From contig NC_068981.1 in assembly GCF_001194135.2 (NCBI RefSeq), positions 152,083,213 through 152,147,212 of the forward strand: a stretch of 64,000 nucleotides of DNA, read 5' to 3'. The notes beneath the pieces are model-generated. The model was not told the DNA's origin. It saw only the letters and a list, made by a program, of their open reading frames with translations, and did no database searches. This stretch comes from Octopus bimaculoides. Taxonomy: Eukaryota. Of this stretch, positions 15,701 to 39,700 are shown in pieces (the stretch's first letter is position 1; every line of letters begins with the position of its first letter). Made by a program: the position numbers and the translations under genes.

Positions 15701-18700
15701 GAGAAAGAGAGAGAGAGAGAGAGAGAGAAAGAGAGAGAGAGAGAGAGAGAGAGAGAGAGAAAGAGAGAAAAGCAAAACAGATTAATATGGTATAAAAAGA
15801 ACATGCAAAGGATTTGGAACAAAAAATTAGCAACATATTCGACAAGTGAAATACAAATATTGATATAACACAATATTCAAGCAGGAACTATCTTCTATTT
15901 TTTTGCATTATATTTCGTATCAAATACATTAAAAAATTCTAAACATCTTAATATTAACTCGATGCAGGATACAAATGTTATGAGTTACACATATTGTTAA
16001 CAGTAGCTTTAATGTTTAGGAAATATTCTAAAAGGATAATCTTGTAAAATAAATACAGTAAAATAAATTGCTGTACAACTAATATTTTGTAAAGAAACTA
16101 AACTCTTCGATGTTAACTACAAATAACAGACGCACATGGAACTTCAAGAAAATCTTGCAATGACTATAAACAGATATGTATTATATTATTAAGTAACTTA
16201 TGGGAGATATTAACATCAAACAGCAGTGTTACTATGTCTTCAATATGTATGCTGAATTAAACTTGATAAAGTAACAAGTCTATCACAACATTACTTTTAT
16301 CAATGAGACGCAATCAGAGATGGTAGCGTAATAAATATATAGTTGACAATATATATTAGTCATATAGTGAACAACGTATAGTCGAATAGTTAATAATATA
16401 TAATCATATAGATATTATTTCGTAAACAAGTCTAAATATTTGGCTGCATGCGCATATACTTTCAATGCGTTATAGAAAAATAAACAGTGGACTTTCAGAA
16501 TAACTGTCATGAATCAAATGGGATTTCTTGTTATTTTTTTCTGGATTTTATAAATATTTTATACTATCTTATACTACAAAGCAATTGTAAATCGCTTTTG
16601 CGAAAGTCATTCAAAATCCACGTTTGTCAAATGTCTCAGCCATCTTCCCCACTACCGCCATTAATCGTGTCTGCGCTATAGCTGCCACAATTAAAATGAA
16701 TTGTTTTTGCGTGATCATTATTTTCTGTCATGTTATAGTATTAGACATTCTGAAACACTTGTGATTCACATTAAAAAAATTCTTAATCCCTCCTTTCCCA
16801 TCATCGTACCTTTCATGATTAAAATGAATATATTTTGTTGGTTTTTTTTCTTTACATGTGTGCCATTTTATAAAGAACAAATACCCGTTTTCTATACGGC
16901 ACAAAACGTAAAGAAACTACATTTAATACGTGTATATTTCTTCACCTCCAGGTTACTTCAGTTTTCACGCTTTTGCCACACTGTAAAAAAATTATTTTAA
17001 TTGCAAAGGGTATGATGAAAGGGGAGGAGATGTGGGGGTTAAGATTATCCTTTTTGTCGAAAAGAGAATTATAAGTGCTTCAAAATGTGGAATACAGTAA
17101 AATTATGAAAAATAACAGAAATAAAATAATCATCTTAATCGTGACTGCTATTGTGAAAGAAGCATGATTTACAAAACAGATTTTAAAAAGAATTTTTTTT
17201 TTTTAATGATTTATATTTCTTTTGCAGTGTAGGATACTATGGAATGTCAAAAATCCCAAAATAACATATAAAAAAAATTGATGCTTTCGTGACAGTTATT
17301 CGGAAAGTCGGCCCAACGAACATTTTCATAACAACAAACAGATATTTAATTGCCTAGCTTATTGTCAATATTGATATCGAACGGAAAACAACGTAATTGT
17401 TCCTACGTCGAATGACAAGTGCCTCAAATTAATGCTCTTATCAGCGAAAGCCATAAAAAATCATAGCACAGTATATTCCATAGCCGACAAACAATACTGT
17501 TGTCACATTGAAGACTAAGCAAACAAATTCGTGGGTTAACAAAACAACAGCAACTCCTACAGTAGGCATTCCTGCAGAGCATAAATAAATCTGAACCATC
17601 TCTACAGCATAAATGATACAAAAGTGTAACAAATTTCACTCCTTCAAATAGTCTCTAACTTATGAAATTTTGGCTGGAAATTTGATCTCTAATTAGAAGC
17701 AGATACATACACGAAAAAAATTCAAAACATTTCTTTGCAATAAACTGATTGCTTCTAATAAATAAACAAGCGTACCTTCTACAGACAATGTGGCTGATGT
17801 AGACACATCACCTGCCACACAAGAATATTCTCCTATATCTTCCAAAGTGACATTTTCTATAATCAATTGATGAACCTTCATATCGGCAACAATCTTCAAG
17901 TGATTATCACTTTTGATTTCTTTGCCATTCTTTTTCCATGTGACTTTTGTGTTTTCCTTTGACAATTCACATATTAAAACAGCCTTTTCTTTTTCTTTCA
18001 CTTTAATATTTGTTAGTTTCTTTGTAAATTCGGGTTTTAATTCTAAGGGAAAAACGAGTAGCAATTACTAAACATCACAAGAGAGAGAGAGAGAGAGAGA
18101 GAGAGAGAGAGAGAGAGAGAGTAGGGAAGAGAGAAAAGAAGAAAAAAGAGTACAAGGGAGAGCGCAATAAAATATATAAATAAACATATAAAGCAGAAAA
18201 TAGTTGCATATTGTACAATTAAGTTTACAGATTAAACATGGATATTAGCATATAATACATAACACATCGATATTCAAGCGGTAGTTTTCTATATTCTGTA
18301 TTATAATTCACATTATTTATATTAAAAGCTTTTAAACATTTTACTGTTAACTCGATGGGTTGAATGCTATGAGCTGTAAATCATCAACTTACATACAGTT
18401 GTAGTTAGCGTTAATATTTAGGAAATAGTAATAAACAGAGGCTTCCATATAGAATATGATTTGGAGTAAATTCTGTACAATAACTAGCCGTACAGTCAAC
18501 ATAGCCATGTTCTGAGACGTGACCCAATGAAAGCCTAGTAATGGCTATAAAAAAGGACGGATAATATTTAATAAAATAGCTTATTGTTAATACTGTAAAA
18601 TAAATCAAAAAAATGTTAATATTCTTGAATGTTTATACGGAAATACATTTGATAGGCTAACAAGTGTATCAAAGTAATGTTCTTATCAGTGAAAAATCTA

Positions 18701-36700: not shown

Positions 36701-39700
36701 GCATTCATAATACACAAACAATTTTATTATCACATAAAAGCAAAAGCAAACGAATTTGTATGGACAATAACACAACCGTAGCAGACAGACATTTGCGCCA
36801 TTAAGAAATGACACACTCACCAGTGTCAGGCTCTTCTACAGTAGGTGCTTCTGCAGGGTATAAATAAATATGAATCACTATCACAGCATATTATAGAAAA
36901 TGTCAAAATAGCATAATTTACATGTAATTCTTCCCTACATCACGGTTGTACCGCTAGAAACTATCCTTACGATTAGTGATTTAGTAACGTCCAAGACAAA
37001 ATGTTCAAAGTACAAACTAGTTGTAATGTACAAATGGACATACCTTCCACAGATAATGTGGCTGATGTAGACACATCACCCGCCACACAAGTGTATTCTC
37101 CCACATCTTGCAAAGTAACATTTTCAATAATCAATTGGTGGACCTTCATATCAGCAATAATCTTCAAGTGACTATCACCTTGAATTTCTTTGCCGTTCTT
37201 TTTCCAAGTAACTTTTGTGTTTTCCTTTGATATTTCACACACAAAGACAACTTTCTCATTATCTTTCACTTTAATATTTGTTAATTTCTTTGTAAATTCA
37301 GCTTTTGTTTCTAATAAAAAAAACGAGCTACAGTTACGAAACATCACATGGACAGAAAAGAGAAAGCAACATGACATACGAAGAACATGCAATGGATTTT
37401 GAAGCATAGTTACACATGAGTTTCACATGAAACGCGTAAATATTAAAGCTACAACATACAATTCAGCGAGATATACGGTGAACGCTTATACACTTTAAGC
37501 TTATAATCATTGTTATTATTTTAAAATTATACATTATACAGTACATTATATATACAGGGTGTCCTAAAATTAAGGTAACCAGCTTTTTCAATTTTACCAA
37601 AACAAAGTATTGTTATATTTCGGGTTCGAACGTTGCAATGTAATGGTAAAGGAAACACAATTATTATATCATCAAATTTATTCGATATGACCATCTCTGT
37701 TTAGAACTACAACCTTAAGTCTAGGTGCGAATGCTTCACACGCAGCACGCACTAGGTCTTGCGGAATTGAAACCCATTCCTGGCGCAGTTTTGCCATCAG
37801 AGCATCGAATGAAGCATGATGAGTGCTCCAGACAAAACAGACAAAATGGACAAAACAGAAAAACCCAACGGGTTGAGATCGGGGCTTCTTGAGGGCCATA
37901 CATCCTTGCCTATAAACGACGGAATGTTTTTCTGAATCCAGTGTTGTGTCTGTTTGGAGTTGTGGGATGGTGCCAAGTCCTATTGGCGGCTCCAAGGTGC
38001 ACCTTGAAAGTGTTCATTCGCCCATGGAAGCAGTTAATCTTCCAGAATGTCGCTAATGTATCGCTGGGTGTTAATCTTAATACTCGAGGGCACAAAAAAC
38101 GAAGAGAGACCATCCAGTGGCTACCACAGCCGCCCAAACTATAACTGACTGGATTTTGACGTCGATTTACGAGTCAACACTCGATGGAGCCAGATAAACT
38201 CCAGAGTTAGTCATTCTGATGGTTTACTGTCTATTCGATGTCAAATTTCTTTTCCTCGGTGAACACCAGGTTGGGCAGCGCGCCTTCAACAATCTGACAT
38301 AGGATAAGACGACTTCTCTCCTGTATCATGACTTTATAAACTTGCGTGAGCTCATGACGACGGATCATCTTGTAAGAGCTGTGATTGTATTTCGGTCTAT
38401 AGCCATTATCTAATTTATAAATCTGAATTTTAGTCTGAAACAAAAAGAAGACACACTAATCTTGTATGATTTTTATACCCTATCACATTTATTGATAGTT
38501 ATTAAAGCCCGAAACTTCGGTTGCTTTAATTTCGGGACACCCTGTATATATATATATATATATATATATATATATATATATATATATATATATATATGCT
38601 ACAATTAGATTTGCAAGGCAAGCACATCAACAAAAGAGCGATAACATACTACAATATAATATTCAAGCAACAAATGTCATCTAAATTTTTTTAGTATAGT
38701 CTATATTATCGGGAGCGCAAAATTTCTTGATATTCTAATGTGAATGCGACGCAAAATGTTGCATGTGATATTCGCATAATTAAGTATAGGTTTATTATGT
38801 GTTGAACTAATTTTATACCCTGTGATACTGCACAAACACTTTGTAAACAAGAAATTAAGTATTTGAGGTGAAATGTACACATATGAATACTTATCTAGCT
38901 TATTGTATATATTGGTATTAAAATATAACAACGTTAATTTTCGATCTTTTTTTCTTTTTCACAAAGGCTAAAGCAATGCTCCTTATCAGTGCTCGCTTAA
39001 TAGAAATGTAGACGCATTACATTCATCGTCGCTAAAAAGTAATAGTATCACATTAAAGCCAATGCAAACGAATTCGTGCGGATAATAAAATAACACCACC
39101 AGACACAAATATTGGCACCATTAATGAAGGAGACACTCACCAGTGTCAGGTTCTTTAACAGCAGGCGCTTCTGCAGGGTATAAATAAATATGAATCACCT
39201 TCAGATTGGTAAATAATATAGGAATTCTCATTCTAACACAACTTACATGTTTCCTTGAAGTATGTCATCTCTAGATTCTAAAAATAACTTGATTAGTAAC
39301 AGTTAGTTTGTAAATGACAAGATATCTAAAATATTTCCTTGTAAGGAACTAGCTACTTTTAATATATAAACAAACGTACCTTCCACAGAAATTGTGGCTG
39401 ATGTAGACACATCACCTGCCACACAAGAATATTCTCCTATATCTTGCAATGTAACATTTTCTATAATCAGTTGATGAACCTTCATATCAGCAACAATCTT
39501 TAAGTGATTATCACTCTGGATTTCTTTGCCATTCTTTTTCCATGTGACTTTGGTGTTTTCCTTTGATATTTCACATTGCAATACCACTTTTTGCTTTTCT
39601 GTGACTTTAATGTTTGTTAATTTCTTTGTAAATTCAGGTTTTAGTTCTAAGGAAAAATGAGCTAGTGTTACAAAACATGGATACAAGAGAAAACAAACTG

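Follow-up and report, generated by a model that had tools for sequence, protein, structure and literature searches.

Ig exons and linker mini-exons form a tandem array in Octopus bimaculoides

We analyzed a 64,000-nucleotide stretch of the Octopus bimaculoides genome (assembly GCF_001194135.2, contig NC_068981.1, positions 152,083,213 to 152,147,212 of the forward strand; hereafter the window, numbered from its first letter), whose minus strand carries a tandem array of immunoglobulin (Ig) exons and 30-nt linker mini-exons. By sequence comparison, the gene is probably an obscurin/UNC-89-like (titin-type) sarcomeric gene. We consider it likely that this octopod array evolved by birth and death at the level of single exons, in which symmetric cassettes were lost independently of one another. 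The ancestral unit would have consisted of two symmetric phase-1 cassettes, a 267-nt I-set Ig exon and the 30-nt mini-exon, the latter supplying a 10-residue P/V/E-rich inter-domain linker and bringing with it consensus splice sites and a conserved downstream intronic element of about 110 nt. The array would then have evolved by duplication of units and death of exons one by one. Since every cassette preserves the frame, losing any Ig or linker exon leaves the protein uninterrupted; the most plausible route to loss would start with a splice-site mutation and proceed through skipping to neutral decay.

The window is AT-rich (G+C about 31%), and the units of the array are about 1.0-1.3 kb long. 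Using the peptide of a recurring open reading frame (ORF) as the query, a tblastn search of the whole window identified a 90-residue Ig domain in 20 intact and 5 degenerate copies, all on the minus strand, and the Ig consensus was run against the window by both tblastn and nhmmer. No Ig exon was found in the window upstream of 45254. An intact Ig exon is 267 nt long and of phase 1-1, with the edges ...yyyag/AA and ...GAAG/gtayg (slashes mark exon boundaries); the ag/AA acceptor and the G/gt donor are present in all ten intact Ig exons between 37310 and 17554. The exon at 17776..18042 encodes a whole I-set domain (Pfam PF07679, E value 7.9e-18, 64.8 bits against a gathering cut-off of 23.7), with exon residues 4-87 of 89 aligned to profile positions 1-85 of 90. 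Among solved structures, the Ig exon comes closest to Ig domains from MyBP-C, titin and obscurin.

Pairwise identity among live Ig exons is 90-98%. Some of them were copied in blocks, as seen in the pairs 30509/27964 (98% identical), 32885/26308 (96%) and 31531/29200 (93%, their linker modules 90%). The five dead Ig copies match the live consensus at 71-79% identity and have accumulated private indels as well as stops; where their ends can be aligned (25007, 23597 and 19363), the acceptor and/or the donor is gone. Because the dead copies are only 58-68% identical to each other, we concluded that they decayed largely independently. In the 3' part of the window, from Ig 11445 to Ig 779, every Ig exon is intact and every linker is dead.

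Several Ig exons have a long (CT)n/(GA)n microsatellite immediately upstream (18080-18140, 15690-15768, 23641-23738, 25045-25150 and 35926-36124). These repeats form part of the polypyrimidine tract on the transcribed strand, and the one at 35926-36124 is expanded beside a dead Ig exon.

The linker mini-exon is a 30-nt cassette of fixed frame

About 190 nt downstream of the Ig exon lies the linker mini-exon, 30 nt long and also of phase 1-1. Its pattern is cag/AA..CCTGACACTG/gtgagt, which encodes (E)xPxVxEPDT, as exemplified by the copy at 18880-18851, tatcctgcag/AAATCCCTGTTGTAGAAGAGCCTGACACTG/gtgagt. Nine linkers in the window are fully intact, and all of these are exactly 30 nt, phase-compatible and bounded by consensus splice sites. 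Of the three frames of the linker, only the one in register with the Ig exons is open; the others contain TAG and TGA. Linkers of altered length have decayed in other respects as well.

We built an nhmmer profile from the live modules, covering -40 to +115 around the exon. Module scores fall into three classes: live (158-191 bits, the nine intact copies), intermediate (75-132 bits, the modules at 32.4k, 15.1k, 30.0k, 0.3k and 8.7k) and dead (below 65 bits, all others). With this profile, a linker-module remnant was detected in every unit, including the 3' units with deleted or dead linkers. Therefore, the ancestral unit was Ig plus linker.

Two further elements in the array are shorter. The variant at 30027-30010, cag/GGCTTCCTGCTGTTACTA/gtgagt, encodes (G)LPAVT(K) and has intact splice sites; it could be an even shorter functional mini-exon. 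At 8689-8630 (minus strand), a dead linker has lost its original acceptor, and an internal ttag might speculatively define a 15-nt in-frame exon, AAGAGCTGGATACTG/gtgagc.

Related Ig domains with linker mini-exons occur in Argonauta and cuttlefish

The octopus Ig domains are most similar to a hypothetical protein of Argonauta hians (74-83% identity) and to Ig-like proteins of cuttlefish (44-45%), and after these to molluscan and vertebrate titin and obscurin fragments. The Argonauta locus contains a homologous array and, after it, a separate gene model of 4853 aa that has RhoGEF and PH matches, and it is on this account that we regard the gene as probably obscurin/UNC-89-like.

The Argonauta linker, too, is a 30-nt phase-1 exon (tag/AACTAACTGTGGTAGAGCAGCCTGACACTG/gtaagt), which specifies ELTVVEQPDT. 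Eight units in a row have it intact, and a sub-array without detectable linker modules comes after them. A linker-bearing sub-array thus precedes, in transcript order, one free of live linkers in both species (39647-13065 and then 11445-500 in the window; 1-7400 and then 7400-21497 in the Argonauta locus); linker remnants are detectable in the second of these sub-arrays in the window and not in that of Argonauta. Four Argonauta gene models join Ig domains directly, all of them within the part without detectable linker modules.

In annotated cuttlefish proteins, only some Ig-Ig junctions carry a linker, which is 12 residues long and of P/E/V/K composition. For two of these linkers, the coding sequence is a separate 36-nt phase-1 mini-exon flanked by canonical splice sites. 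In the cuttlefish locus these mini-exons (11150-11190 and 28610-28655) are of phase 1-1 and lie in introns tens of kilobases long. Because cuttlefish also has linker mini-exons, the Ig/mini-exon architecture is probably older than the split between octopods and cuttlefish.

Direct junctions are found elsewhere too. A transcript-like cephalopod protein (P0074) reads ...LAVEDTKPEF... across a direct Ig-Ig junction. Direct junctions are common in the window and are found in Argonauta and in this protein, which indicates that alternation of Ig and linker is not obligatory. No linker-like sequence was found in a cephalopod contig from ENA. Three Logan contigs of a related cephalopod (SRR11869390, SRR11869385 and SRR11869384) contain one Ig exon, 84% identical at the protein level, whose donor now reads G/TT and which is followed by a dead linker. 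They represent another decaying unit and are uninformative as comparators.

Linkers are conserved together with a downstream intronic block

We compared the modules of the two orphan linkers (live copies beside dead Ig exons, 23094 and 18851) with the module at 13065. The three show 87-91% mutual identity with no indel over 175 nt, whereas identity drops to 62-79% in the flanking introns and to 66-82% in the adjacent dead Ig copies. Fisher P was 0.001 for the most conservative pair. Such conservation is what would be expected of retained elements under purifying selection, and the surviving linkers, the two orphans included, have probably been kept by selection as real exons. We considered whether the likeness of 23094 and 18851 could instead come from duplication after death, and rejected this: the dead Ig copies resemble the live consensus (71-79%) more than each other (58-68%), with only a mild excess of shared changes.

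Conservation extends into the intron. From +7 to +110 after the exon, live modules are 77-91% identical to the consensus, as against mostly 53-75% in dead modules, which reach 80% only in the recently inactivated module at 32.4k; the more distal intron is 48-80% identical. The block of about 110 nt after live linkers (e.g., 18844-18741, 23087-22984 and 13058-12955, minus strand) has a core, GTYTGCTTTKGCTTYAAT, that is common to the window and Argonauta. We speculated that it may be an intronic splicing enhancer. The block contains paired UGCU/GCUU motifs, which we take to resemble muscleblind-type YGCY sites. It had no Rfam match, the RNAalifold covariation term was -0.01, and single folds had z-scores between -0.45 and -1.2, apart from one of -2.6. 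With no Rfam match, covariation or significant fold, we rejected an RNA gene or structural explanation of the block.

Within the exon, the 3' half, CCTGACACTG, is invariant even at synonymous sites, and the 5' half varies non-synonymously. The mini-exon end GACACU can pair with GUGUGUC at intron +5 to +11 (18857-18838 and other live linkers, minus strand), giving a small hairpin whose loop contains the 5' splice site. This pairing is invariant in the window, hence without covariation, and broken in Argonauta.

One live linker per multi-unit gap is a real pattern compatible with random loss

A preliminary description of this stretch, made from the sequence alone, had proposed that complementary exon death keeps at most one linker between live Ig domains. 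We confirmed its observations. All the exon ends it named are exact (26041, 21439, 20241, 17776, 37044, 32618, 23094, 18851, 36821 and 33597), and its three strings of live and dead exons in transcript order are correct, with live copies intact and dead copies marked by lost AG or GT, frameshifts, deletions and stops. Linkers 23094 and 18851 are intact beside dead Ig exons, and the linker of the preceding live Ig is dead in each case (25.8k and 20.0k). Nowhere in the window do live linkers stand next to each other. The linker at 33597, which it had called weak, has an open frame but a score of the dead class (57 bits versus 158-191 for live copies).

Several elements had been left out of that description: the module at 22462-22327, the variant at 30027-30010, the live linkers between live neighbors (31021, 28685, 27436 and 21228), the live Ig-Ig junctions without a live linker (32885>31531, 18043>15606 and all from 11445 to 779), and the multi-unit gap 45254>39647, which has no live linker. 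The last is 5.3 kb long and contains a very decayed Ig remnant (43921-43784), dead linker remnants (42771-42718 and 40412-40291, all minus strand) and a run of N (44305-44436).

We then asked by permutation whether linker loss departs from independence, keeping Ig status fixed and shuffling linker status among modules. A first count comprised 25 modules (18 in the linker-bearing block) and the nhmmer count 27 modules (19 in the block, 39.6k-13k). Under strict calls, the first count gave a probability of 0.42 for all modules and 0.14 for the block that no gap holds two or more live linkers, and of 0.11 and 0.08, respectively, that the three multi-unit gaps hold exactly one. With the nhmmer count, the probability of as few gaps with at least two live linkers was 0.32 (all) and 0.09 (block) under strict calls and 0.56 and 0.22 under lenient calls; that of as many multi-unit gaps with exactly one was 0.25 and 0.055 (strict) and 0.60 and 0.17 (lenient). 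Across the framings, the probability of no gap with two or more live linkers ranged from 0.09 to 0.42 (strict) and from 0.22 to 0.69 (lenient). No P value reached 0.05 even in the most favorable framing, with three informative multi-unit gaps and a test statistic chosen post hoc. The presence of one live linker per multi-unit gap is thus a real pattern that is indistinguishable from random loss. Independent loss at about one-third to one-half survival would produce it, and no alternation rule would be needed.

Weighing the alternative explanations

According to the complementary-loss explanation, the linkers flanking a dead Ig become redundant and selection, acting on the spliced product, keeps exactly one of them, a form of duplication-degeneration-complementation at the exon level. 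We consider this unlikely, and we are similarly doubtful of its corollary that the downstream element of about 110 nt would let orphan mini-exons splice on their own. What speaks for complementary loss is that each of the three multi-unit gaps in 37310-17554 has one clearly live linker and no more, that adjacent live linkers occur nowhere, that the surviving orphans are constrained, and that in the block 39.6k-13k every surplus module is deeply dead and 9-12 of 13 gaps have a live or nearly live linker. Its difficulties lie in the small number and post hoc choice of informative gaps, with P from 0.05 to 0.6 depending on the calls used, and in the duplication of two-unit blocks, through which unit states are partly inherited rather than independent, so that the effective sample is smaller than it appears. 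Moreover, linker-free junctions are tolerated at at least eight places, the multi-unit gap 45254>39647 retained no live linker, and a whole Argonauta sub-array lacks detectable modules. The order of death that complementary loss predicts is not visible either: dead Ig copies and dead modules show similar extra divergence, so the order cannot be read. The data lean weakly toward complementary loss, without demonstrating or refuting it. From the preliminary description, birth and death at the exon level stands insofar as linkers behave as autonomous units of selection; an Ig-linker alternation enforced through complementary death, for which it had suggested a permutation test against independent random loss, was not supported.

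Some observations weigh against independent loss of translated cassettes and should be set beside those in its favor. The lowest P, about 0.055, was obtained with strict calls in the linker-bearing block only. In that block, deeply dead modules make up 6 of 9 in multi-unit gaps versus 1 of 10 in single-unit gaps; such a concentration would fit relaxed selection on redundant linkers, and local co-decay would predict the same. The synonymous invariance of CCTGACACTG suggests that part of the constraint acts at the level of RNA or splicing rather than protein. Finally, protein database searches returned no protein carrying the octopod linker between Ig domains; the matches were the Argonauta models with direct Ig-Ig junctions, single-exon ORF calls on the ENA cephalopod contig and short genomic Logan contigs. 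Among the representative-protein matches to one Ig exon, which were distant giant Ig proteins only, no EPDT-type linker occurred in an Ig-Ig context.

The last two points, together with the invariance of the adjoining GTGAGT and the co-conservation of about 110 nt of downstream intron, would also be explained if the 30-nt elements were untranslated, serving as intronic splicing-control elements or decoy exons. We regard this as quite improbable: every live copy has a length of exactly 30 nt, is compatible in phase and is open in no frame but the required one, copies of changed length have decayed otherwise too, the peptide is P/V/E-rich like the annotated cuttlefish linkers that come from equivalent mini-exons, and there is neither an Rfam match nor a significant or covarying structure. 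The linkers are therefore probably autonomous, translated coding exons. Translation had been suggested in the preliminary description, and length, phase, splice sites and the Argonauta and cuttlefish counterparts argue for it, with the missing database protein on the other side. Still less credible is that the mosaic of live and dead exons is an assembly artefact, arising where a tandem repeat was collapsed or wrongly joined. The window, as draft sequence, does contain runs of N (3883-4098, 44305-44436, 49240-49249, 59081-59476 and 60656-61326), and its live Ig exons share 90-98% identity. However, 17554-37310 is free of N runs, the dead copies differ from live ones by 21-29% with many private indels, unlike assembly errors, and the introns are diverged enough to anchor the assembly.

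Coordinates of the exons and neighboring ORFs

The Ig exons and linker modules are listed in Table 1. Apart from the array, two minus-strand ORFs (37678-38137 and 58421-58903) look like transposon remnants, and neither has a Pfam match at E<=0.01. The C-terminal end of the former is reminiscent of the C terminus of Tc1/mariner transposases.

Table 1. Positions and state of Ig exons and linker mini-exons in the window
Feature	Coordinates	Strand	Evidence
Live Ig (I-set) exon, 267 nt, phase 1-1	37044..37310	-	tblastn, nhmmer, splice sites
Live Ig exon	32618..32884	-	tblastn/nhmmer, splice sites
Live Ig exon	31264..31530	-	tblastn/nhmmer, splice sites
Live Ig exon	30242..30508	-	tblastn/nhmmer, splice sites
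Live Ig exon	28933..29199	-	tblastn/nhmmer, splice sites
Live Ig exon	27697..27963	-	tblastn/nhmmer, splice sites
Live Ig exon	26041..26307	-	tblastn/nhmmer, splice sites
Live Ig exon	21439..21705	-	tblastn/nhmmer, splice sites
Live Ig exon	20241..20507	-	tblastn/nhmmer, splice sites
Live Ig exon	17776..18042	-	tblastn/nhmmer, splice sites, Pfam I-set
Dead Ig, 71% identical to live consensus, indels, stops	35633..35879	-	
Dead Ig, 72% identical to live consensus, stops, indels	33997..34253	-	
Dead Ig, acceptor ttcG, GC donor, stops, frameshift	24726..25026	-	
Dead Ig, acceptor lost, insertion, stops	23335..23615	-	
Dead Ig, both splice sites lost, stops, frameshifts	19090..19381	-	
Live linker	39141..39170	-	
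Live linker, (E)APTVEEPDT, cag/../gtgagt	36821..36850	-	module 157.6 bits
Live linker, (E)LPVVIEPDT	31021..31050	-	
Live linker, (E)LPAVIEPDT	28685..28714	-	
Live linker, (E)QPAVIEPDT	27436..27465	-	
Live orphan linker, (E)IPAVGEPDT	23094..23123	-	module 187 bits; 88-91% identity with modules 18851 and 13065, no indels
Live linker, (E)VPVVGEPDT	21228..21257	-	
Live orphan linker, (E)IPVVEEPDT	18851..18880	-	module 181 bits
Live linker	13065..13094	-	
Dead linker module, donor GT>TT	34745..34899	-	
Weak, probably dead linker: open 30-nt frame, acceptor aag, donor GTATAA, flank decayed	33597..33626	-	57 bits
Recently inactivated linker module: CAG>CAA at the acceptor, G>A at the last base, GTGAAT donor, frame open	32263..32433	-	130.6 bits
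18-nt in-frame linker variant (12-nt deletion), ambiguous status	30010..30027	-	98.8 bits
Dead linker module, acceptor lost, donor region deleted	25708..25858	-	
Dead linker module, 29 nt, frameshift, in-frame TAG	24348..24482	-	
Additional partial dead linker module, with loss of most of the exon and the donor	22327..22462	-	
Dead linker module, AG and GT both lost	19937..20050	-	
Dead linker module lacking the 3' half of the exon, the donor and the proximal intron	17482..17606	-	

Relation to known systems and significance

Segmentally duplicated Ig exon arrays with pseudo-exons are familiar in titin- and obscurin-type genes. Like obscurin/UNC-89, the octopus array is a long run of near-identical, tandem sarcomeric-type I-set Ig domains, each in one phase-1 exon of about 270 nt and ending in a ...TSATLxVE motif, and vertebrate obscurins are among the named matches. 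In vertebrate obscurin, tandem Ig domains are joined directly, without separate linker exons. The octopus unit differs in having the 30-nt linker mini-exon as well, and the window lacks the RhoGEF and kinase parts. With the I-band Ig/PEVK arrays of titin, whose tandem Ig domains are among the closest solved structures, it shares symmetric cassette exons, a giant sarcomeric gene, segmental duplication and a P/E/V-rich linker. Titin PEVK exons form a separate block of motifs of about 28 residues and are not interleaved one-to-one with Ig exons. Unlike them, the octopus linkers have 10 residues of the form xPxVxEPDT, are interleaved with Ig exons and show no PPAK-type repeat.

The nearest parallel with mini-exon linkers comes from the cuttlefish Acanthosepion pharaonis (P0002 and P0008), which has homologous Ig domains (44-45% identity), with mini-exon linkers at some junctions and direct joining at others. 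Its linkers differ from the octopus ones in being 12 residues long and of other sequence, and its introns are far longer (86 kb for 607 aa). The linkers also resemble regulated microexons, being very short and symmetric, with a strong polypyrimidine tract, a GTGAGT donor and a conserved downstream intronic block, although 30 nt is at the upper edge of microexon definitions. As in duplication-degeneration-complementation and birth-and-death evolution, duplicated modules decay independently, and dead copies stand beside retained ones. In duplication-degeneration-complementation, however, the retained parts are jointly needed, whereas here linker-free junctions are tolerated, one multi-unit gap kept no copy, and loss does not depart from independence.

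A literature search returned nothing on cephalopod obscurin arrays or on an interleaved Ig/mini-exon unit in cephalopods. Here we document a two-exon repeat unit, Ig plus linker mini-exon, in a cephalopod gene of the predicted obscurin/titin type. Mini-exons of this kind are common to octopods and cuttlefish, and orphan mini-exons persist under probable constraint beside dead Ig exons. Exons of 30-36 nt may be missed by gene predictors. If complementary loss proved true on larger samples, it would be a clean natural case of selection reading the spliced product and not the genomic repeat unit, and it would bear on how the length of inter-domain linkers is tuned in elastic muscle proteins.

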